Assembly (NCBI GenBank): GCA_965112735.1
Contig: OZ218952.1
Location: 3,038,001-3,102,000, forward strand
DNA: 64,000 nt
Direction: 5' to 3'
Origin: Phaeosaccion multiseriatum
Lineage: Eukaryota; Protista; Ochrophyta, other classes
Notes under the pieces: generated by a model
What the model saw: the letters and a program-made list of their open reading frames with translations, nothing else
What the model was told of the DNA's origin: nothing
Databases searched by the model: none
Shown here: positions 4 to 59,000 of the stretch, piece after piece
Layout: each line of letters begins with the position of its first letter
Numbering within the stretch: position 1 is the first letter of the stretch
Made by a program: the position numbers and the translations under genes

Positions 4-687
4 TTGAGCCAGAGTCAGGGCCAGAGGCTGGGCGGCGGGGGGGGGGCGACAGTCAGAGAGAGAACTGCAGGAGGGGTGGCTGCAGTGGGTTGGTCCAGCA
101 CACCCAAATTCCCACCCCTTGCCAGGACGCCAACTAGGGAGGGGAGGGGTGTTGCAGCGAGAGGTAGAGCAGCAGCAGCAGCAGCAGCAGGAGGAGGAGG
201 AGGAGGAGGAGGAGATGGTGACCCCCGAGGAGGAGGGGGTGGAACCAGGAAGGGACGTGGTGGTGGGGGAGGAGTGCAGGGGGCGGTGTACAACCTGGAC
301 GCCTTCATGCAGACGCTGTTCAGCCCCTTTCTTTTGGCGGTCATGACTCTGTTCGTCTGCGGAGCCTTGGCCGTTGTACTGGTATACACGTACGGTGGTG
401 TACCCTGCTTGCTGACGATTGGGGCGGGCGCCATCGTAGGCACGGTGTTCCAGAGTCAAGAGAGGCTCGCGAAGGTATATAGAGCAGTCTTCTCGTCAGG
501 GGGCAGGGAGAGAAATGAGCAGCAGACTACAACAGCGGCGAGGGTGGCGTTACAGCCGCAGTCCCCGCAGCGAGAAGACGGAGGAGGGGTGAGCGGGGGC
601 GGAGGCGAAGGGTCGAGGCAGTCGCTGACCCCCAGGAAAGCGGCGCGAGCCGCCATCACTGTACAGAGGAGCGTGTATGATACGTAG
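4..687 (+). CDS. Probable 3' end of a gene entering from the left; small membrane protein C-terminus
   Basis: Frame is open from the window edge to TAG at 685-687. It has two hydrophobic stretches (LFSPFLLAVMTLFVCGALAVVLVYTY, VPCLLTIGAGAIVGTVF) and is followed by AT-rich UTR-like sequence. No family recognised. Confidence 0.35.
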   Translation: MSQSQGQRLGGGGGATVRERTAGGVAAVGWSSTPKFPPLARTPTREGRGVAARGRAAAAAAAGGGGGGGGDGDPRGGGGGTRKGRGGGGGVQGAVYNLDAFMQTLFSPFLLAVMTLFVCGALAVVLVYTYGGVPCLLTIGAGAIVGTVFQSQERLAKVYRAVFSSGGRERNEQQTTTAARVALQPQSPQREDGGGVSGGGGEGSRQSLTPRKAARAAITVQRSVYDT

Positions 688-6648: not shown

Positions 6649-30833
<24,185 letters not shown>

Positions 30834-31351
30834 CGCCTGCCCCGATCAGCTGCGGCCGTGCAAAAATCAGCGGCAGCAGACACGGCCCGTCGCCCAGCCT
30901 TTGCAGGCTGCTAATTGTTTTTTACCCCAACCCAAAGGATGTCAACGGTTGGAGGATTACGTAAGATTTTTTTTTTTTTTTTGTTCCTTCCTTGTCCCTT
31001 TTATTAGAGCGATACGCTTCCCCCTAATGAGAAGTAACGCCCAGCGACAGGCATTGTGCTGAGGATGGATGCGAGAGGAGAGCGAATCTCTCGTCGTTGC
31101 CACGAGTGGGGCCGCTACCTCCCTCTGCCTAAGAGTAGGAAAGTACCCCCAAGCTGAGCGCTCCTAGGGAGAGAGAAGAGACCAAGCTAGCGCCTGGAAG
31201 CTTCTTTTGAGATGAGGAAGTTTCCACTTGGTCTTACGGGTTCAGGAGTGCGGAGGAGCCAACCAGGCCCCAAAAGGTCCGCAACCCACATCTTATTGTC
31301 CTGCCTACCTAATAATACGTAATTGAACCTTCGGCCCCTGACAAGGTTCTG

Positions 31352-31462
31352 GGTTCCAGGTTCTGGCCGGCGCCAGCCGGCCGGGTTCCAGGTTCTGGCC
31401 GGCGCCAGCCGGCCAGGTTCCAGGTTCTGGCCGGCGCCAGCCGGCCAGGTTCCAGGTTCTGG
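31352..31462 (+). repeat. Left subterminal array: 3 full + 1 partial 32-bp units
   Basis: Unit GGTTCCAGGTTCTGGCCGGCGCCAGCCGGCC(A/G); exact 32-bp period. Confidence 0.95.
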
Positions 31463-31622
31463 GGGAACGCCATGTAATAAGGCAATGATAAAGTGAGCCA
31501 CCTAGGATGTGGGACAGACCACACACCCCAGACAACCAACAGCAAGGGGTTCGTATCCTATGTTGAGCGTGTATTAGCTTTCTTTATCAATCTCACTTCC
31601 CTATCTATCCTTCTCCTGCGAC

Positions 31623-32360
31623 ATGCATGCCGTTCATATGAAGCACGTGTTCCCCAACTGGCGACAATCCGGATTCGAACATACCAAACACCTGCTGAAG
31701 AGCCAGGGCCTGGGCAGAGGGATCGTCCAGAACACCGGCTTCCCCTTCTTCATGAGGGCAAGAACGGTCACCCCGCGACGAGGGAGAGGGGGGAGCAACG
31801 CCGTGAGGAGTGACGCCCACGTGGCCAAGCAGATGGAGATGGACATCGTGACTCCCCCCAGGATGTTTGAGCTTCCGTCCGATCATGAATATGGCGACGG
31901 CCACAAGTCCCTCATGATCGACGTCACGCTCACAGATGCCACCAACACCACCAACCGGGCCAAGGCATCGAAGGAGGCACTCGCGGCAGCCAAGAAGGCT
32001 GAAGCGACCAAGCGGACCAGGTATGGGGTGCCACAGGTAGGCATGGAAGGCCAGGGTGGGGACATCCACTATGACCCCACGCGGTACCACCTTGTCCCTT
32101 TTGCAATAGAACAGCAAGGTGCATTTGGCCCGTCAGCACAGATGTTTATAAAAACACTCGCCACCCACATGGCTGGGGGGCACGAACATCTGGACCTGAG
32201 GGCTTATGCGAGGGCTGTTTGCGTCATTCGGCGACGATTAGCCGTAGCGCTCCAGCGGGCCCGACACGAACGATCGGTTCGCCACAGGATCCTGGCTGGT
32301 ATCAACTTTGTTCCAATGGGAAGAACTGATGAGTCAGAGGGACACGACCTCGAGGGCTAA
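31623..32360 (+). CDS. Stand-alone restriction-like endonuclease (RLE, PD-(D/E)xK fold) of the CRE-like non-LTR retrotransposon type
   Basis: Motif order MEMDIV...LMIDVT...AAAKKAEATKRTRY...LVPFAIEQQGAFGPSA..FIKTLA...RRRLAVALQRA matches the RLE pattern (RPD / IDV / K..KY / P.A.E..G..G / SVALQR). No RT domain; an in-frame TAG lies upstream at 31575. Confidence 0.78.
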   Translation: MHAVHMKHVFPNWRQSGFEHTKHLLKSQGLGRGIVQNTGFPFFMRARTVTPRRGRGGSNAVRSDAHVAKQMEMDIVTPPRMFELPSDHEYGDGHKSLMIDVTLTDATNTTNRAKASKEALAAAKKAEATKRTRYGVPQVGMEGQGGDIHYDPTRYHLVPFAIEQQGAFGPSAQMFIKTLATHMAGGHEHLDLRAYARAVCVIRRRLAVALQRARHERSVRHRILAGINFVPMGRTDESEGHDLEG

Positions 32361-32596
32361 GTTCCCCGGGGCGGTGAGACATTACTTTTAGACAACCATA
32401 GATGGCACTTAAGGGTGTAATATATAAGCCTTTTGAGACTCCACAAAAGTCCAACGCTTCTCTCTCTCCCAGCCTTCTTGTATTACTTCGATTACTTATA
32501 TGAACACCAACTACACTTTACGTTCCTCATGCTACCTAACTTCCCCCCTCATGCCTCTGGCAAAACTCGCTGTACTCTGTTCTCGGCATTCTGTTG

Positions 32597-35500
32597 ATGG
32601 TCAAAGTACAGCACGTGCCGGCGACATGCACAGTTGTCCTGCGAGATGCTCGCCTCAAGGATACCGGCGGAGTGGCAGTAGTAGGCGACTGTGTGTACAT
32701 TTGCAGCAGCAGAGACAACAAGTTGTACGTTGTTCACGTCAAGGAGTCATTGACAGGGTCTCACGAGACGCACGATTTTGACGAGGGCCGGGATGGGATT
32801 GACACTGTGGAAGGTGGGGCGGGTGTGCCAGGGAGGAAGAAGAAAGCCGAGCTCAAGATAGTGCAGACACTGCAGCAAAGTCAAGGTGACGCCCCAGGGA
32901 AGGTCGTTGAGCACTTCATGCCGCTTCGGAGTCCCATTGCGGTGTGTGTAGGGTTGGGCTCGGACAAGGACTACGATCTTTTCGTGTCTCAGCAGCTGCC
33001 GGGGCGTAAAGGGGGGCTCGCTCAGCTCTCCTTTCGAGCGCGCGACCCCACCTCTGCCCTTTGCACTGTGGTCGCCTCGCTTCCCGGAGAGCCGGCAGGT
33101 GTGACTGCTCTTTCGGCTTCTTGTATTGCAGTACTCGTGGATAGGTCCTTGTTCGTGTTGGACAGATCTTCCCGACAAGACGAAGCAAAGGAGGGGAGAG
33201 AAGAGCAGAAGGAGGAAGAGGAGGAGGAGAAGGTAGAGGAGGAGGAGAAGGAGGAGGAGGAGGAGGAGGAGGAGGAGGAGGAGGAGGAGGAGGAGGAGGA
33301 GGAGAAGGAGGAGGAGGAGGAGGCGGAGGGGGGGGGGAGGGGACAGGGGGCGGAGGTGGAGGAGGAGAAGGATTCTGCAGAGACGGTCGAAGCGCGGAAT
33401 GAGCATCGCACGAGGAGCAGAGCTAGAGGAGAGTCTAGGGGGGTGAGGGGGGGGGCGGGAGAGGGTGGAGGGCATCTATTGCTCGCAGTGGAGAGCGTTG
33501 GCGAGGCGCCCTGTGGATTGCATGCAGCACCGACTGAGGTGTCCGAAGATGCGGATGCGAGACACGTCATGTACGTGGTTGATCAAGGCGACCACTCCGT
33601 CAAGATGTTGTGGCAGAGTGCTGCCACAGAGCAATGGACTGTACGTGTGGTGGCAGGCGGCATCGGCAACGACAAAGCGGGCAAGAGCACTGGGAGCGGC
33701 ACGGCCAAAATGGTCGCTCTCTTCAAACCTACCTGGGGCTGCTTCCTTGGTGGGAAAAGTTTCCTGTTCTCAGACAGTGGCACACAGTGTATCCGGCTTC
33801 TTACGGACATGTACCCTCTAGCGGAGCGCCTTCTTCCAATGCTCCGGCGCTTGGCCGAGGCGTACCAGCTCCTCCCTTCCTGCGCTGTTGACGGCGTGGA
33901 CATGCACAGAAATGCCAAGTCATTGACCGAGTCTGCAGCCAAGATGGCCTCTGTGCACCTCCACGTCGAAAAGCTGGCAGAGGACGCCGCAAAGCGGACC
34001 GGGAAGTCGCTCGCATCCGTTCAGGGGCCCGAGAGCGCCATCTCGCCTTCGCTAAGGAAGAGCATCAAGTGCGCCGTCATCGCCTTCTCGAAGCTGATGA
34101 AGAGGCTGAAGGAGGAGGTGAGTCACAAGTGCCACGACACGACGGAGGGGAAGAGCCCACTGCCTGTCTGCCTTGCTATTTTTTATCTTGCGCTGACATT
34201 TCCCCCATCTCCCCCTCCTCCTATACCGATGCTCCCTTGCTCCACTTTGGGTCTCTCTTGTCCTGCAGGGAGTGCCTGCACGTGTGACCGACAAGATTAT
34301 GGCTAAGGCATTGCTCACCTTAAATGTGGAGACCAGCTTCACGCAGTACCGCAATGGGGGTGGGGGGAACACCAACATTCCAGATGTGCTCCAAGTGCTT
34401 CGACGGCGACAGATTGTCGGGGTTGAGATGGCGAAGCGATGGAGTGGTGGCAGGGGATATGTCTACAACACGGACAGCAGGTCCAGCGGCAAGCAAACGT
34501 TCCGCGGCCACTACCACCACTCTCTCAATTTCAGCAGGCGTGTCGCTGCCCCCGTCTATACATGAGAAGGAAAGTTCCAGCACGCTCTCTATCTCCAGCG
34601 GAGCAAGCGACGAGAGAGCAGGAGCTGCGTATACATCGTCAGGCGGCTCGAATCATGAGGCCATGATGCGTAACGCGGGTCACAGACAAGGGAAAGGCCC
34701 AAGTTGGTTCTCTTCCCCTGTCAATCGCGTACGACAAGATCGAGAGTCTGGGTGATGACACGTCTGGGTATAAGCCAGGTTCGAGCAGCTTCAGGGGTGG
34801 AGGGGGGGGGCAGAGCAGCACGGGCACCCAGATCGTGCACCAAGAGGGAGATCTGGTCTACGTGAAGGCTGCGAATGGCTCGGGCAATGAGCTCTTCTTT
34901 GTGGTCCAGCTAAGAGAAGACGTAAAGGAGGCGTACAAAAAGGTCTGCAGAGGAGCTGGAAAGACAGTGAAGATGGGAAAGACAGTAGAGCCTTCACACC
35001 CGGGCGTGCGACATTTTTTCAAGGGCAGCGCAGGTGGGGATGAAGCAAAAGGTGGCTCCGGTGATGTGGTATACAACTACACCCATGATGCAAGCGTGAA
35101 CGTGGAGGCGATTTATGGTGCGTTGACTTCGTTCGGCAACGCGGCCTACCAGTACGAAGGCTTCTCAGTTGGGACGGAGGGAAAGCAAAAAAAGAAGGGC
35201 AAGAAGAAGGGAGGGAAGGGTCAAAGCGCTTCGTCAGTCCCCTCTGATGTCGCCACCACCAGCCCGACCATGCAGACACTTTTGACCAGGCGCTTGATGC
35301 GCTTTACCATCACGGAGGAGGAGCATGACAGCATCGTCGGTATTGTCAATGACTCAAGCAAAGAGGATATCGACAGGCAAAATCGAGGCTTACGCGAAGC
35401 AGATGAGGAGGAGGAGGTCGCATCAGAAGACGAGGACAGTGAAGACGAGGGAGAAGAAAGCACGCCTCATCAGCGCAAGCTGGGAGTTATGGTCAGCACG

Positions 35501-35746
35501 AGGTCGTCCCGGGGCCGGTCGACAGGGGCGCCAGTGAGTTACAGAGATTTGCACATCGGCAAGAAGAGGAGGAGGGGAGGGACAGTGTGTGTGGTGTGCA
35601 GGCAGGACGTCACAGAGGAGCGTCCACACATGCTGCTATGTGATACTGACGCGTGTGGTGGAGAGTATCACCTCGGCTGTCTGACGCCTCCTCTCACTGA
35701 GGTACCTGGGGGGGATTGGTTTTGTCCGGCGTGCCGCGAAGGGTAG
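32597..35746 (+). pseudogene. Disrupted transposase-like gene: NHL-like beta-propeller, catalytic-Glu region, BAH-like segment, acidic linker, PHD finger
   Basis: Exon 32597-34117, phase-0 intron 34118-34268 (GTGAGT...CTGCAG), then exon from 34269 (LLTLNVETSFTQYRNGGGGNTNIPDVLQ). A frameshift near 34560 and an in-frame TGA at 34664-34666 follow, after which the frame is open into the PHD ORF ending at 35746. Confidence 0.68.
35588..35734 (+). other. PHD finger (C4HC3) coding segment
   Basis: CVVC...MLLCDTDACGGEYHLGCLTPPLTEVPGGDWFCPAC, a canonical PHD signature. Confidence 0.93.
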
Positions 35747-35952
35747 GCTAGTAGGTTGGCGCGCGCGAAAGAACTCTGAACTCTCCATTATAAAATGTAT
35801 ACATGACGTATATATATATATATATATATACTATTTTTTTATTATTTGTATACTATTTTGCGGTCCCAGCCACACACGATGGGCACTCAGGGCTGGGCAT
35901 CAGTCCCTCTTTCCCTCAGTCACCCCTAACCTGGAACCGAAGAGCTGGGTCA

Positions 35953-36097
35953 GGTTCCAGGTTCTGGCCGGCGTCAGCCGGTCAGGTTCCAGGTTCTGGC
36001 CGGCGCCAGCCGGCCGGGTTCCAGGTTCTGGCCGGCGTCAGCCGGCCGGGTTCCAGGTTCTGGCCGGCGTCAGCCGGCCAGGTTCCAGGTTCTGGCC
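35953..36097 (+). repeat. Right subterminal array: 4 full + 1 partial 32-bp units, same orientation as the left array
   Basis: Same unit with GCCA/GTCA loop variants and a 32-bp period. One inverted half-unit AACCTGGAACC lies at 35928-35938. Confidence 0.95.
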
Positions 36098-36175
36098 AGG
36101 GTCGCCTCAGAACCTTGTCACGGGCCGAGAACCTGTCCAAGCTCCACCACATATCGCCGGCGCCAGCCGGCTATC

Positions 36176-36410: not shown

Positions 36411-38066
36411 TTATGCCAAAAAGTCGGCGTCAGAAGGCACGTGCGAGCCAAACGCCGAGATGCCCTTTCTCGGCCGATCTCTGCTTCTGCCCCTGCTCCT
36501 GCTCTTGCTCCTGCCCTTGCTCCTTCTACGCGAGCTACGCGCGGCCTTGTTGCCTCCATCCTTTCCCTCCCCCTGCTGGTCCTTGTACGGCTGCTGCGAA
36601 GTCCGCTGATTGCTGCTACCTCCATCTCGGGAGCTTGCTGCTGGGGAAGGCGGCTCCGTCAGACGGCCTCTGCCACCACCACCACCACCGCAGCCATCGT
36701 CGGGCGAGGGGGAAGGTGAGGCGAGAGGAGAGGAGCGGTCCCGTTCGGCCTCTTCGCAGGTGATCCGCTCGAGGCGGACGGCGGGTTGCTTGACTCGAGC
36801 CTTCCTGTCAAGCGCCACTGCCTCCAGGGCCCGCGCTTGCGCCTCACACCCAAACCCCGCCTGACAGGACATCCAAACGGCCTCAAAAATATCGGCCAAA
36901 CTGTCTACAAAGAACTGCCAGGACGTCTTGGGACTCAGCATGTTCTGTAAGCGTCCCTTCTCCGTGGGCTTGAGAGAGCTGTCGTCTGCCCCCCACTCCA
37001 CGAGGTGCGGGACAAGATCATTGTGATCCCGAGTAATGGCGTGGTACAGCGCGGTGCAGCCTTTCCCATCAGCCTCATTCACGTCCACCCCATGCCGCGT
37101 CAGCAGCATCTGCAGAATGTCGGCTTGACCAGTCCTCGCAGCCACGTGCAAAGGTGTCCGCCCGTCAGCGTCTTGGCTGTTGCAGCTCGCGCCTGCCTTG
37201 AGCAGGAGGGCCAAGCAGTCGAGAGCTCCGTATTCCGCTGCCTTGTGGGACGCCTGCTGACCTCGCCCCGTCCTCAATGACCAATCCGCCCCGACCTCGA
37301 GCAAAGCCGCCACCACCTCTGGGCTCCGATTGACGCACGCCCAATGCAAGGCGGTGAAGCCCGAGGCGCCCGTGAGGTTAATTCCCTCCACTCCCCTTCC
37401 CCTGCTGTGCGTCTCCATCCCGACAAGAATCTCCTCGCAAACGACGAGGGGGGCGTCTGCGATTGCGGCCAGTACCAAGGCAGGGTGGCCCTCTCTGTTC
37501 GGTAGCAGCGGGTTGGCGCCCGCCTCGAGCAGTGTCTGGATGATGTCGATGTTCCCGTGCGTTACAGCGAGGTGGAGCGGAGTGTCACCATCAGTATTTC
37601 TCGCATCTAAGTCCAAAAAGCGTCCCGACCGGATCAAGGCACGTAGGCTGTCGCCAGAAGCAGCACAGGCAGTGTAGTGCAGCTCCGTGTTCCCAGCCGC
37701 GTCCACGGGAGGAGTGTGCTCCTCCCCGGCTGAGGCTTGTCGGCGCTCGTGACCAGCCTCGCCGCCAGACGCACCTCTTGGCGAACCATTGGCAGACCTT
37801 GGTGACGACAAACGAATCCTGCCGTACACGTTGGGCATAACCACCATCTCTCCACGAGCTACCGGGGAAGGCACGCTGTCATCATCAACAGGAGAGCGTG
37901 GTGACTCTTCCAAACTTGTCCATCTTCTTCTCCTCCGTTCGGGATCGATACTCTCCAGTCTCTCTCGTACACCAGGAGGAGGAGAGAAAGGCCCAGCTCG
38001 CAGCTTTCGATCGCTCTCTAGGATGACCGCCTCCCCCCCCGAACTTCCCCCGCTGCCGTCAGCCAT
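36411..38066 (-). CDS. Ankyrin-repeat protein (single exon, about 7 repeats)
   Basis: GNTELHY, GDTPLHLAV, GHPALVLAA, GFTALHWAC, ASHKAA, GRTPLHVAA and GCTALYHA repeats in a 551-aa ORF. Confidence 0.9.
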   Translation of the reverse strand: MADGSGGSSGGEAVILESDRKLRAGPFSPPPGVRERLESIDPERRRRRWTSLEESPRSPVDDDSVPSPVARGEMVVMPNVYGRIRLSSPRSANGSPRGASGGEAGHERRQASAGEEHTPPVDAAGNTELHYTACAASGDSLRALIRSGRFLDLDARNTDGDTPLHLAVTHGNIDIIQTLLEAGANPLLPNREGHPALVLAAIADAPLVVCEEILVGMETHSRGRGVEGINLTGASGFTALHWACVNRSPEVVAALLEVGADWSLRTGRGQQASHKAAEYGALDCLALLLKAGASCNSQDADGRTPLHVAARTGQADILQMLLTRHGVDVNEADGKGCTALYHAITRDHNDLVPHLVEWGADDSSLKPTEKGRLQNMLSPKTSWQFFVDSLADIFEAVWMSCQAGFGCEAQARALEAVALDRKARVKQPAVRLERITCEEAERDRSSPLASPSPSPDDGCGGGGGGRGRLTEPPSPAASSRDGGSSNQRTSQQPYKDQQGEGKDGGNKAARSSRRRSKGRSKSRSRGRSRDRPRKGISAFGSHVPSDADFLA

Positions 38067-47056: not shown

Positions 47057-48671
47057 CGTAGTAGTAGGAGGAGGACGACTGATTGATGGAAGGAAAAAGG
47101 GGAGGCATAGTGTGCAAAAAAAGCAAGCAAAAATACCTACGCACCGTACATTCCATACGACAACAAAACAACAAACAAACAAACAACAACAACAACAACA
47201 AAAAACAATAACAAAACGAACAAACAAAAGAACGAACAAAACAAAGGCCTTATCACCCCATCCTCATCATCCTGCTCACCTCGCCCCCGTTGGACAGCGC
47301 CACTCTTATGACAGGCGTCTCCTTGCTCTCCTCTGTGTTCATATCATCTTCGTCCTCCATACCGGCATCGCCACCGCTAATGCTTCCGTGGCCGCTTAAG
47401 TTCGCCATGAAACCCGACGCTGTTTGAGGAGGCTGCTGCTGCTGACCGTTACTGTTTGCACTGGTGTTGAGGGAGGAGGAGGAGGAGGAGGAGGGGGGGG
47501 AGGAGGGGGAGGAGAATGAGGAGGAGGAGGAGGAGGAGGAGGAGGAGGAGGAGCATGAGGAGGAGGAGGAGGAGGAGGAGGAGGAGGAGGAGCATGAGGA
47601 GGAGGAGGAGGAGGAGGAGGAGGAGGAGGAGGAGCAGGAGGAGGAGGAGGAGGAGGAGGAGCAGGAGGAGGAGCATGAGGAGGAGGAGGAGGAGGGGGGG
47701 TGGGGGAATAGCCAGACGGCGATGGAAGTTTGTCAAGCGAGCTGCACCTTGACTTTGCTGTGTCACTTTCTTACCAGCCGCCCGCATTCGAAACCGCCGA
47801 AACGGCCCCGCCTCCCGCCAGGGACAGTTTCCTGTTGCTAAAGTCGAGGGCGTCGTTGAGAATGCCGATGCCCCCCCCGACCGTGGGAGTTGCCGCTGTC
47901 TCAGGAGGCATGTCAAACTCAAGTTCCTGTGTAGAAAGAGGGAGAGAGAGGGGAAGAGAGGGAGAGAGAGAGAGAGTGAGAGAGATGTAGTGTTAGACAT
48001 GTAGAGAGAGAATAGAGAGGGACAGAGAGGAGAGAGAGTGTGAGAAAGAGTGAAGTTTCGGGCGAGGGAAAAGGAAAGAAAAGGAGCGCGGGGTGTCCAA
48101 CATCATCCCAAGAGCCCAAGACACCGCCCTGGGCGTTGACACCCTCTCTCTGTCTCTGTCCTGACACCCCTCCTCTCCTGACTACCCCTCCTCTTGTCCT
48201 GACACCCCCTCACCCCCCTCACCTGCAACCAAGGCACTCTGTAGTGAGTGTGCGTGTCCACAATACTCCCGTCAGGCCCTTGCGCGAAGACAGACACGGT
48301 GCTAATCTTGGGTGGTGCGTGGTGGATGGTGAAGGAGATGGGCCTTCCTTTGCCGTCACTGCGCAGGAACCCTCCCACCAGCTGCTGCCCCCTGCGCCGA
48401 TATTGAGTCACTGGCGCACGCACTACACCTTTGCGGTTGGGCCGCACCTGGGGGTTGAGGTGGGGGTGAGGGTGGGGGTGGAGGTGGTCAAAGGCATGTA
48501 AAAGTGAGTGAGTGAGGGAGGGAGGGAGGGAGGGAGGGAGGGAGAGACGGAGAGAAGGAGAGAGGGAAGATGGGAGGGAGGAAGGAAGGAAGGAATGGGA
48601 GGGAGGAGGGGAGGGAGGGAGGAAACACCCACACCCACACGCACACACCCACCACGCACACACAACACACA

Positions 48672-55356: not shown

Positions 55357-56064
55357 ATGTAGAGCGAGCGAGTGGTGAAGCGAGCGAGTGGTACTGCCAT
55401 CATCATCGGAGGGTCATCGTCAGTGTTGGATGTGTTGGATGCGATACCCGGCCGTTACTTTGTTCTGTCTATGCAAGCCCTCTTACGATGTATGCCCTTC
55501 TTGGCCGAGTAGTGGAATGGGCCGGAGGAGGGAAGAAGCAGTGGCAGGACGACAGACGCCCCTTCTCTCTGCAGAAGAGTAGTTGTGGCTGGGGAGATTG
55601 GGGCGGTGTCTGTGAGTGAGTGAGTGAGTGAGTGAGTGGGCTCCTCGTTTCCGTCCCGCTAGACCAAAAATCCGACTATTCTATTTGCTTCATTATTTAT
55701 GCTCGACTGCTCGAGAGGAGTCCAACACTAAAGGGAGAGGCATATGAGAGGCTTTATTGACACTTATTAAAATCTTATACTTCGTAGGACGGAGTGGGCG
55801 AGGGGGGGGTGGGAGCAGAAAAAGGAAAAAAAGAAAAAAAAAAAAAGTGTGTTGGTTCTCCGACTCACAAGGACGACGGCAAGCACCTGCGCGGTTCTTC
55901 GTCTCCTTTTATTTCTCCCAATAAAGACACACGCTAGCGCCAGGAACACTGCCAACCCCAACCCCCTCCAACTCTTGCTTCCCTGCTGCCTCCCGTGTCC
56001 ACGGTGCTTGCAACTTTGGGTGAAAGCCCCGCTGAGATGGTGTGAGAGAAAACGTGGCTTCAAC

Positions 56065-59000
56065 ATGCAGTTCTGTCGAAAGCTCACTCCAGTGGGGAAA
56101 TCCCTCCTCCCTCGGACCGCGTACGCTTTGCGGCACGGATTCAGAGCTAACTCTGCCGGTGTACCAGCATCGCAGGCGCTGTTCTCAACTTCAACTGCCC
56201 GAGGGGCAGCAGCACGAGCTGAGGGGAGACAGAAGGGAGGTGACAAGAGGAGAGCGACAACGCCGCTGGCACCCTGCACCCAGCATCAGCTCTCCCCACC
56301 CTTGGTGTCAACACCAACCTTTTCTTTCTCCACGAGCGCTGCCACCACTACCACCTCAGCGCAGCCGCCGCCACCTCCCTTCGACAAGATCCTCATCGCA
56401 AACCGAGGAGAGATTGCGTGCAGGGTCATCAGGACTGCGCGTCGTATGGGCATCAAGACGGTGGCAATCTACAGCAGCATCGATGACGGGGCCTTGCACG
56501 TGCGAATGGCGGACGAGGCGGTGTGTGTAGGCCCGGCCCCTGCGCTGCAGAGCTACCTTGACATGGATAAGGTCATGGACGCAATCGTCAGCACAGGGGC
56601 GCAGGCAGTACACCCTGGCTACGGCTTCTTGAGTGAGAACATGGCCTTCTCGGCCGCGTGCGAAAAGGAGGTGAGAGGAGAACAGAAGGGGGGTGGAGTA
56701 GCCATGGTTCGTTCGCCTCACTGGTTGAGTGACTTTCACAGTGACTTGCAGGAAAGGGCAGGGAAGGGAAGGGACGGGAAGGAGGTTTGGAAGGCGAAAG
56801 GGGCTGCTCTGCTCCCTGTTTCTGCTCTGCTTGCTCTGCCCCTGTTGGTGCCCTCTCTGGCGGTCTACATGCTTGCATCCTCTGCTACTGCTTTGTCTGT
56901 GATTCATTCGTTTATCGTTCGCTGGCTGGCTCTAGCTTGCTTGCTTACTTACATACTTACGTTTTGTTTGCGTCTTCCGTGCCTTGCTCTTTTGGCTTGC
57001 TTACTTGCAGGGGGTCAAGTTTATCGGGCCTCCTGCCTCCGCCATTCGGGATATGGGAGACAAAATCGCCTCTAAGATCATCGCACACGACGCAGGGGTC
57101 CATACCATCCCGGGATACAAGGGAGAGATACGCGATATGGAAGAGGTGTGTTTGTGTGAATGTGTGTGTGTGAGAGAGAGTGGGCAGGGAGAGGGAGGGA
57201 GGGAGAGGGAGGGAGGGGAGAGGGAGGGAGGGAGGGAGGGAGGGAGGGGGGGAGGGAGGGAGGGAGGGAGGGAGGAAGAGAGGGAGAAGGAGGGAGGGAG
57301 GACGACGGAACATGCCTTGCCTCTCCCTCCCCACAACTGCCCGATACACCAAACGCACACAACTCTGCTCCTCTTCCTTTAGGCCGTGAGGATCGCCAAT
57401 GAGGTGGGCTATCCCGTGATGATGAAGGCCAGCGCCGGAGGGGGCGGCAAGGGAATGCGCGTCGCCTTCAGTGAGTCCGTGCGTGTGGAGGGATGGTGGG
57501 GGGGTTGTGGGTGGGTGGATAGTGAGTGACCTTCTGTGAGACATACCGGGGATGGACAGTGGGTGGAACCGTAGCGACGTACTGACTTACTGGGAGTGGA
57601 CTCGCGTGTGTGCCTTGTGTTGTAGGTTTGGCGTTGCCGGAAGGAGGGAGGGAGGGAGGAGTAGGGAGGGGGGGAGGGAGGGAGGGAGGTGGTGGAGGGA
57701 TAGGTGGGTGAGTAGTGATCTTCTGGGGCAGATGGTGATCTCCTGGGGAGGGAGGCCGGCGCGGAGGCCCCTATGGTGCCTTTGATTGTCTCTCTTATTG
57801 TACTCGTACCTGACCCGCCCTCCTCTCTCTCTCACTGTAAACACTCGTCCTACCCGACCGTTCCCAACAGACGACGATGAGGTGCGCGAGGGCTTCGAGG
57901 TGTCGAAGAGAGAGGCCATGAGCTCTTTCAACGACGATCGAATGCTCGTGGAGAGGTTTGTGGAGGACGGGCACCACATCGAGATTCAGGTAAGGTTCTT
58001 GTCCTTTCCTTCTCTCCGTTTCCTCTCTTTCTTTCTCTCCTCTCTCTCTCTGCTGCCTCTCTCTCCTTCTCTCTCTCTCTCACTCTCTCTCTCCCCCCCT
58101 TAGGTCGTCGCGGACAGTCACGGGAACGTTGCCGCCTTCCCGGAGAGAGAGTGCTCTGTCCAGCGGAGGCATCAAAAGGTGAGGGAAAGGAGGCGTTTCT
58201 CGAGGCGTTCCTCTCCGTGATCCCTTGCTCCCTCCTGCTCTTGCTCCTGCTTCTGCCGGTGTTTCTACCTTCCACTTGGTTGTGGTTCCGTCCGGTCCTT
58301 CGCTCTGCCCTGCCCAGATACCTTTACCCTATCCATACACCTCTACTCTGCCATCCCCTACCATCCCCTGATGACCATCCACTGCCATCTCTCTCCAGGT
58401 GTTGGAGGAGTCTCCAAGCGTGTTGCTTGACGACAAGACTCGCCGAGAGATGCAGCGACAGGCCATCCTCCTGAGCAAGGCTGTGGGTTATCGGAGCGCT
58501 GGGACGGTGGAGATGCTCTGCGATAACGACCTCAATTTCTACTTTCTGGAGATGAACACCCGGCTGCAGGTTAGTGGAGAGGAGGGGGAGGGGAGGGGAG
58601 GGGAGGGAGGGAGGGAGGGAGGGAGGGAGGGAGGGAGGAAAGGAGAGAGGAAGGGAGGGAGGACTCTCTCTAATTCTCTGCCGACGCTGCGAAGCGAGGG
58701 ATGAGGGCACTAGCTCTCTGGCGAATGGGATGTGCAGTGTTGATGACTGTATGTCGCCCTCTTTCCCTCCCCCCCGGGTCAGGTGGAGCACCCCATCACA
58801 GAAATGATCACGGGCTTCGATCTCGTGGAAGAGGTACGACAGACTTTAGGCACACTGAAGGACAGGCTGCTGCCTTGCCTAGCTCAGCGCTTGTTCGTGT
58901 GGTGTGGCCCATTCTTTTGTCACTCTCTTGCTGCCCCCCTTCCCTGCCACGCACCCCATCCCGCGCCACCCCCATCTCTTCCCATTCCTTCCCATCCACT

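Follow-up and report, generated by a model that had tools for sequence, protein, structure and literature searches.

Insertion domains beside the active site of DDE transposases set DNA-end processing; those known so far, in Hermes, Tn5, RAG1 and P transposase (a GTP-binding domain), are small or helical. In P transposase the insertion lies between strand 5 and helix 4; it opens with the Asp of the D(2)H motif and ends just before the Glu helix. THAP9 carries the signature motifs '...FFD' then 'SCHLLRLIRNA', and FSQDHLELFLKMLRQ with the catalytic E613 (PMC10824691 Table 1). Dada elements (Kojima and Jurka 2013, PMC3706591) encode a DDE enzyme with a DxxH motif, make 6–7-bp target duplications, have no terminal inverted repeats (TIRs) and insert into small nuclear RNA (snRNA) or transfer RNA (tRNA) genes. 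Here we analyse a 64,000-nucleotide stretch of the ochrophyte Phaeosaccion multiseriatum (assembly GCA_965112735.1, contig OZ218952.1, positions 3,038,001–3,102,000; hereafter the window), a microsatellite-rich stretch of eukaryotic contig with ~58% G+C, in which a damaged element at 31331–36128 carries a gene for a transposase-like protein with a β-propeller and a PHD finger.

An earlier annotation, made from the letters and open reading frames (ORFs) alone, had rebuilt three ORF fragments (32597–35746) into a single protein: a P-element/THAP9-type transposase with an NHL-like propeller as its insertion domain, a BAH-like region and a terminal PHD finger. With a probability of about 0.8, we read 31331–36128 as a 4.8-kb copy, internally deleted, mutated and non-autonomous, of a TIR cut-and-paste transposon whose family had not been annotated before. 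In outline the original prediction is right, with a single transposase-type gene whose insertion domain is a propeller and which ends in a PHD finger; its P/THAP9 and BAH labels are unproven.

The broken gene and the ends of its element

The element has 20-nt TIRs, 32-bp subterminal arrays and a perfect 6-bp target duplication, GAACCT, the one informative insertion (coordinates in Table 1). The TIR core CGGCCCSNGACA is found at two places in the window, one on each strand, where 0.11 occurrences would be expected. Left and right arrays are 94–97% identical and run in direct orientation. Their unit is composed of GGTTC-CA-GGTTC followed by the palindrome CTGGCCGGC/GCCGGCCAG, and it forms a hairpin (z −2.8). 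Equivalent ends are present in a distant relative, L003, a 10,965-bp contig encoding the protein P0008 (about 30% protein identity). This 10.7-kb element has perfect 23-nt inverted repeats that start CGGCCCC.GACA, as the window TIRs do, and at both ends, again in direct orientation, 33-bp arrays built alike: a short direct duplication, then a GC palindrome. A second relative contig, L006, ends in a 31-nt tandem array (7588–7707), which is probably the right subterminal array of its element. One metagenome sample contains four paralogous loci that are divergent and have unrelated neighbours. TIRs, arrays, target duplication and the homologous ends of L003 bear out the view that the gene belongs to a transposon. 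An exact DNA scan of metagenome contigs with the L003 TIR gave no match; with the window array unit, two matches (L007 and L008) were rejected as chance, both lying in bacterial genes.

Relatives of the protein come from an exhaustive HMMER scan of 1.84 billion proteins, with 33476–34117 as the query. Of 54 proteins matched, about 30 align in one long stretch and are true relatives, all from metagenome or metatranscriptome assemblies; the other matches are ordinary NHL-repeat proteins, matched blade by blade and confirmed as such by Pfam. P0005 (1,072 aa) and P0011 (1,064 aa) are single proteins with the domain order of the window copy and the PHD finger last. A family profile built from 16 relatives, run on the six-frame translation of the whole window, matches only the three ORF tracks (E 6.7e-87, 2e-9 and 5e-27). 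Because P0011 is collinear with these tracks by tblastn, and the profile finds no others, the three reading-frame pieces are, on sequence grounds, one broken gene, as had been proposed. Word-indexed protein searches gave no match with exon A residues 295–508, P0055 only with the N-terminal region of P0013, and no sequences beyond itself with the family alignment.

The first piece, exon A, is a frame-2 ORF (32594–34117) that begins at 32594/32597 and is followed by a GTGAGT donor at 34118. Its propeller part (32594–33805) is collinear with P0011 133–336 and 339–~440 and with P0005 170–339 (tblastn). The poly-Glu tract within it, at 33189–33372, is the sole source of the spurious exon A Pfam matches, and relatives have unrelated variable inserts at this place. 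The helical part that follows holds a conserved TG....QGPE..S.S.R block at about 34009–34023. Since P0011 residue 542 continues across the gap at 34118–34268, this is a true intron, GT-AG and in phase, as first suggested. Codon-usage scores, trained on the window's own long ORFs, are positive in frame 2 over 32680–34117, frame 0 over 34240–34420 and frame 2 over 34720–35500, and collapse within the intron; the long host ORFs use the standard genetic code. At the position equivalent to 34118, the called proteins of several relatives end by reading into the intron (V = GTx). P0005, which is encoded by L006 (3543–6761), has no intron where the window and other copies have one.

Exon B, from 34269, holds LLTLNVETSFTQYRNGGGGNTNIP and reads LLTLNVETSF..R..GGGGN, with the Glu codon at 34329–34331; its frame 0 closes at 34563. 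Relatives can be aligned in frame 0 up to about 34535 and again in frame 2 from 34550–34556, a region where they are continuous. The predicted frame change is therefore present in the sequence and amounts to net −1, yet its place is about 34536–34555 rather than ~34560. The 41-nt mini-intron (34540–34580) offered as an alternative can be dismissed, as it would remove the conserved LYMRRK block at 34556–34573. A low coding score over 34480–34700 suggested a second intron skipping both the frame change and the TGA (for example 34540–34685, or donor 34481 with acceptor 34747); this is ruled out because frame-2 34550–34663 is homologous to relatives. The single TGA at 34664 does interrupt the frame, as noted earlier, and is read through with a sense codon by the L004 ORF 8628–9947 and the L003 ORF 8269–8919, the former being uninterrupted from the LYMRRK-equivalent residues to the PHD finger. 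Judged against these relatives, the TGA is a private nonsense codon of the window copy, and the frame change is private to it as well. Among the metagenome relatives are full-length ones with the N terminus that the window copy lacks, and relatives read straight through both the stop and the frame change.

Upstream, the profile alignment is robust from about 32588, corresponding to ~residue 570–600 of full-length relatives. A weaker blade-1 remnant precedes it, where P0043 residues 578–640 align to 32504–32698 across a TAA stop (tblastn). Homology to the N-terminal part of the family is absent anywhere in the window (tblastn, and the profile on the six-frame translation). The failure of the earlier annotation to see either catalytic Asp in a frame closed by TAA at 32537 is thus explained by a deletion of ~570 N-terminal residues. 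As a consequence of the stop in the blade-1 remnant, the −1 frame change, the nonsense codon and the N-terminal loss, the window copy reads as a dead relic that cannot encode active enzyme. In principle it might still be moved in trans, because both TIRs, both arrays and the duplication are kept.

Catalytic motifs, propeller and PHD finger

Full-length relatives show what the window copy has lost. P0013, P0016, P0063, P0055 and P0008, together with the N-terminal exons of L003, L004 and L006, carry a fixed order of motifs: 'v.l.lDGMl...G', a Cys-rich segment, 'mDCCGsQ', then 'D..H..K..RN' 20–32 residues later. The first Asp (D1) is kept in 8/8 sequences, and the D, H and K of 'D..H..K..RN' are invariant in 11. 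A 'TG....QGPEGNFS.S.R' block lies in the helical region after the propeller, ahead of the Glu motif 'tL.VE.fF..mR....NP'. Here E, F, R and K are invariant in all 18 sequences, the window included, which vindicates the original choice of the Glu in an E..F...R pattern. L003 keeps D1, D2, D(2)H and E; of the D/D/E triad, the window copy retains only Glu, with both Asp deleted. In P0015 and P0060 (residues about 1–30) a Leu replaces the second catalytic Asp (NLLLILGANE versus mDCCGsQ), and from this substitution these may be inactive or domesticated copies.

We modelled residues 200–1319 of P0013 with AlphaFold2 from a 43-row alignment, obtaining a mean predicted local distance difference test (pLDDT) score of 77 and a predicted template-modelling score (pTM) of 0.69. 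Strands and helices follow one another in an order matching the RNase H topology described for P transposase (Table 1). This order fits an RNase H/DDE core with a giant insertion domain, and the modelled fold itself is consistent with one. The model places the propeller at the insertion-domain position, with the D(2)H motif (after strand 5) on one side of it and the invariant-Glu helix on the other.

Foldseek searches of the PDB with this model return six-bladed NHL propellers for all of the best 50 matches, with E down to 2e-11, including Pizza6 (template-modelling (TM) score 0.84), TRIM71/Lin41, TRIM2/3, Thin, PknD and the teneurin NHL domain. The window blades themselves match bona fide NHL-repeat proteins by phmmer (E 1.6e-14 to 1e-4). 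Pfam NHL (PF01436) is not reached by the window pieces, and P0008 is marginal for it: as a whole protein it scores 21.5 bits, where the cut-off is 20, and none of its stretches passes the E-value limit individually. That the family's insertion domain holds a six-bladed NHL propeller is a solid prediction of the model, and the NHL-like region recognized earlier in the window is confirmed by the phmmer matches and by the fold of its homologous region in P0013.

The C-terminal C4HC3 PHD finger (residues 308–356 of the last piece, window 35588–35734) is likewise confirmed, scoring 37.5 bits for Pfam PF00628 against a cut-off of 24 (E 2.5e-9). It matches 98 solved PHD fingers at E ≤ 0.1, the best being those of WSTF, KDM5A/B PHD1, PHF21A/BHC80, BAZ2B, CHD4 and AIRE. 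This group of fingers mostly reads unmodified H3K4. Between the Glu block and the finger lies a β-rich domain (34817–35347 in the window; about 120 aa and about 11 strands in the P0013 model, pLDDT 83–91). Its BAH-like label finds no support: 13 family members gave no Pfam BAH match at E 10, and a PDB profile search with the C-terminal β domain gave only chance LexA matches. PHD is the only genuine Pfam family on the window pieces, with no NHL, BAH or P/THAP9 model even at E 10, and the only one at E 10 on many family pieces. PDB sequence-profile queries with the N-terminal core, the Glu block, the D2–D(2)H block and the C-terminal β domain gave chance matches only.

Relation to known systems and rival explanations

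The family resembles P/THAP9 elements in being a TIR cut-and-paste system, often with introns, that readily gives internally deleted copies, and in a split core, predicted to be RNase H-like, whose large insertion domain runs from D(2)H to the Glu helix. At motif level only, 'D..H..K..RN' and 'tL.VE.fF..mR' are spaced as 'D-SCH-LLR-LIRN' and 'D.LELFL..LR' of THAP9. Several features differ. The target duplication is 6 bp rather than the 8 bp of P elements; a THAP domain is not detected; the insertion is ~530 aa with an NHL propeller, in contrast to the ~190-aa all-helical GTP-binding domain of P; a Cys-rich insert separates strand 3/helix 1 from strand 4; the protein continues into a β-rich domain and PHD finger; and the ends bear 31–33-bp direct tandem arrays instead of 11-bp subterminal inverted repeats. 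There is no Pfam match to P/THAP9 even at E 10 and no PDB match with family profiles. Of the P-element/THAP9-type label, then, the spacing of two signature motifs stands, whereas the profile searches and the duplication length speak against it.

Dada elements, compared by description only, share the DxxH motif, a 6–7-bp duplication and 'D-CCG' at the second Asp. They too are long (4.7–11 kb) and have long, intron-containing transposases in protists, including the alveolate Perkinsus. Unlike Dada, the window element has TIRs and shows no RNA gene at its insertion site: no Rfam family was found in the window, and no tRNA at the reconstructed empty site or its flanks. The D2-to-E distance in Dada is ~176 aa with no propeller, its Glu motif is 'GSNSLE', and its zinc fingers are CCCC and CCHC, where this family has a PHD finger.

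In design, the closest parallel is the RAG1–RAG2/Transib system, a DDE recombinase working with a propeller of six blades plus a PHD finger. The RAG PHD finger couples activity to histone H3 marks. There, however, a Kelch-type propeller and the PHD finger form a separate protein, whereas here an NHL propeller is nested in one chain; Transib duplications are 5 bp long, and its ends are of the CAC type. No sequence relationship links the family to RAG/Transib, and the resemblance is one of design, not descent. NHL proteins (TRIM71/Lin41, TRIM2/3, Brat/Thin, the PknD sensor and teneurin NHL) share the six-bladed fold (Foldseek E 2e-11 to 1e-9, TM up to 0.84), but use it as a terminal interaction module and not as an insert in an enzyme domain. 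A full-text search of the published literature turned up no account of a DDE transposase whose insertion domain is a propeller.

Intact members of the family encode proteins of ~1,000–1,360 aa with a predicted RNase H-like DDE core. Its strand 1 bears D1 ('lDGMl') and the Cys-rich helical insert comes next; strand 4 is followed by 'mDCCGsQ', which holds D2, and strand 5 by 'D..H..K..RN', while the Glu belongs to 'tL.VE.fF..mR'. Between D(2)H and the Glu helix lies an insertion domain of very large size, composed of helices and the nested six-bladed NHL propeller. A C-terminal β-rich domain follows and, in the window copy's subfamily, a WSTF/BHC80/CHD4-type PHD finger comes last. Such a transposase may bind the 31–33-bp subterminal arrays and pair the TIRs, then cut and rejoin with a 6-bp stagger. 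The propeller could act as a docking platform for protein or nucleic acid beside the active site, and the PHD finger, possibly with the β-rich domain, could tether the complex to histone H3 tails and so bias landing. A bolder proposal, which we hold only tentatively and think somewhat doubtful, is that the family is a new superfamily-level cut-and-paste lineage with a single-chain RAG2-like module, the propeller supplanting or enlarging the insertion domain beside the active site, and its integration gated or steered by H3 tail state, as an independent counterpart of RAG1 plus RAG2.

The reading of the locus as a transposon copy has points against it. No family profile significantly matches a known transposase in Pfam or PDB sequences, and no transposase is among the best 50 Foldseek matches of the full P0013 model, which are propellers only; the catalytic core is masked in that search. 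Modelled alone, the N-terminal core is poor (pLDDT 62), and Foldseek finds no meaningful match for it. L003 has no clear target duplication, a single copy is visible in the 64-kb window, and the frame change falls in a C5 run where it could be an assembly error. L003-type elements also carry two more minus-strand ORFs, which in principle could be the real mobility genes. The structural check proposed earlier, run on the relative P0013, thus had a split outcome: E963 lies in a helix within an RNase H-like order, but structure searches bring up no DDE enzyme. The reading as a transposase with a propeller in its insertion domain draws its support from the propeller's position in that model and from the D/D/D(2)H/E motifs.

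The propeller–PHD protein might instead be a RAG2-like accessory, with the true transposase encoded by another gene of the element (such as the minus-strand ORFs of L003, L004 and L006) and lost from the window copy. RAG2 is a precedent for a propeller–PHD protein serving as a transposon accessory, all three loci have unannotated upstream minus-strand ORFs, and the protein has no statistical link to any transposase family. We nevertheless consider this unlikely, since the D/D/D(2)H/E motifs are on the protein itself, invariant in the family and laid out on an RNase H-like strand and helix order, with a spacing that matches the published THAP9 signature motifs. The minus-strand ORFs, for their part, are poorly conserved, and by eye their products resemble a cysteine peptidase and a zinc-finger protein rather than any recombinase. 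It is very improbable that the locus is a domesticated, immobile host NHL–PHD chromatin gene whose stop and frame change are assembly errors or recoding. An intron position conserved in several relatives, intact ORFs in apparent transcripts (for example the 3,952-bp contig of P0011), the coding potential that has been kept and the homopolymer at the frame change would all suit such a gene. Yet TIRs, arrays and target duplication bound exactly this unit, and homologous ends occur in a relative with only about 30% protein identity. Moreover, the N-terminal 570 aa are gone with unrelated sequence in their place, the stop falls in a conserved block that relatives read through, and several divergent paralogues with different neighbours occur in one sample. 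Barely credible is a split into two genes, with the PHD ORF (34835–35746) separate from the NHL ORF. The stop and frame change between the two ORFs would allow it, but P0005 and P0011 hold both parts in one protein, the L004 ORF is continuous from the LYMRRK-equivalent to the PHD finger, and homology is continuous across 34550–34835.

If the transposon reading is correct, an NHL propeller at the insertion position and a PHD finger on one chain would give cut-and-paste enzymes a new architecture, and the family would show that a transposase can naturally contain its own chromatin reader. This bears on how safe landing sites are chosen and on the evolutionary logic of RAG1–RAG2, and it could inform the design of tools for targeted integration. 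Current annotation misses the family: its relatives all carry the label 'hypothetical protein' and match no Pfam model besides PHD, so copies in protist and algal genomes probably pass for host NHL or PHD genes. For the window itself the result is modest, a dead non-autonomous intergenic copy.

Feature coordinates and neighbourhood

Table 1 Features of the element in the window, collinear segments of P0011 and secondary structure of the P0013 model.
Feature	Coordinates	Strand or frame	Basis
Left target-site duplication, GAACCT	31325–31330		identical to 36129–36134, directly outside the inverted repeats
Left terminal inverted repeat, (T)CGGCCCCTGACAAGGTTCTG	31331–31351	+	pairs 19/20 with 36108–36127 on the other strand
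Left subterminal array, 3.5 copies of 32-bp unit	31352–31462	+	Tandem Repeats Finder (TRF), 98% matches
245-aa ORF in the space left by the internal deletion, outside the transposase family	31623–32360	+	coding score
Blade-1 remnant, weak and degenerate, closed by TAA 32537–32539; upstream limit of homology	32504–32593	+	tblastn
Exon A, first part: NHL-type β-propeller blades, most of blade 1 absent	32594–33805	+	collinearity with relatives, phmmer
Poly-Glu low-complexity insert, (AGG)n-encoded, in a propeller loop	33189–33372	+	TRF, period 3
Exon A, remainder: helical stretch within the insertion domain	33806–34117	+	alignment of relatives; helices 650–760 in the P0013 model
Intron, 151 nt, GT-AG, in phase	34118–34268	+	GTGAGT...CTGCAG; pyrimidine-rich acceptor ends at 34268
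Exon B, frame 0: invariant-Glu helix, then FSYxTG..HY block	34269–34539	+	18-sequence alignment
Net −1 shift from frame 0 into frame 2, located at a C5 run	34536–34555	+	homology to relatives
Frame-2 continuation, PRLYMRRK...AARIMRP	34550–34663	+	aligns to P0011 633–~670, L004 ORF 8628–9947 and L003 ORF 8269–8919
In-frame TGA within conserved R..R..RVTD.GK...G..P block	34664–34666	+	sense codon in relatives
Last ORF piece: RVTDKGK block, β-rich domain, acidic linker, PHD finger (TAG stop 35744–35746)	34667–35743	+	profile E 5e-27
Right subterminal array, 4.6 copies of 32-bp unit	35951–36097	+	direct orientation relative to the left array
Right terminal inverted repeat	36108–36128	-	pairs with 31331–31351
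Right target-site duplication, GAACCT	36129–36134		read from sequence
P0011 133–336	window 32582–33178	frame 2	tblastn
P0011 339–542	window 33482–34117	frame 2	tblastn
P0011 542–626	window 34266–34523	frame 0	tblastn
P0011 633–834	window 34550–35149	frame 2	tblastn
P0011 1004–1054	window 35582–35734	frame 2	tblastn
Strand containing D226	model residues 17–30		P0013, AlphaFold2
Two strands	model residues 80–88, 94–102		P0013, AlphaFold2
Helix	model residues 108–123		P0013, AlphaFold2
Cys-rich helical insert	model residues 124–196		P0013, AlphaFold2
Strand, then D411	model residues 201–210		P0013, AlphaFold2
Helix	model residues 215–223		P0013, AlphaFold2
Short strand, with D431..H434 directly after, opening a helix	model residues 228–231		P0013, AlphaFold2
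Further helices	up to model residue 318		P0013, AlphaFold2
β-propeller	model residues 324–649		P0013, AlphaFold2
Helices, one holding E963	model residues 650–807		P0013, AlphaFold2
β-rich domain, pLDDT 83–91	model residues 923–1040		P0013, AlphaFold2

The 245-aa ORF that lies upstream of the transposase remnant has a positive coding score in frame 0 over about 31720–32020. It has the pattern '...MIDVTLTD...AAKKAE..KR.RYG...VPFAIEQQGAFG...', which recalls a nuclease-like domain of other repeats; there is no Pfam or PDB match and no similarity to the relatives' loci or the family profile. It may be a fragment captured from the host or belong to another repeat.

Relatives carry further ORFs on the minus strand. 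One is a second conserved ORF (L003 1399–2130 and L004 1408–2391; 29% identity over 93 aa), in which an H...D...C pattern (NHYSMV / HCDS / SSCGPA) by eye recalls Ulp1/C48 peptidases, with no Pfam match at E 10. Ulp1/C48 peptidases are often carried by transposons. The others (L003 2411–4549, L004 2724–3962 and L006 520–2118) are acidic, low-complexity ORFs upstream of the transposase gene, and end in a Cys/His-rich segment (C..C...QWG...H...GH) that may be a zinc finger.

The element sits intergenically, with the 3' end of an ankyrin gene on one side and the 5' start of a dynein heavy-chain gene on the other. The dynein gene (7755–30833, minus strand) is very large and has unusually long exons. 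ORFs 7755–13661 and 14451–18236 contain AAA_7/8/9, MT stalk and Dynein_heavy domains, and ORF 29229–30833 looks like the dynein N-terminal start, placing the transposon about 500 bp upstream of it. The ankyrin-repeat ORF (551 aa, 36411–38066, minus strand; Ank_2 E 1e-37) abuts the right end of the element with its 3' end. Long (AGG)n/(CCT)n and other 3–4-nt microsatellite arrays occur at 17490–18240, 21650–21930, 47470–47720 and elsewhere. Some of this repeat sequence falls within ORFs and codes for poly-Glu or poly-Gly, as in the propeller's poly-Glu insert. Farther away, a plus-strand ORF (55849–57075) encodes a biotin carboxylase N-terminal domain (PF00289, E 4.5e-39) and is probably an exon of a gene for acetyl-CoA carboxylase or another biotin-dependent carboxylase.

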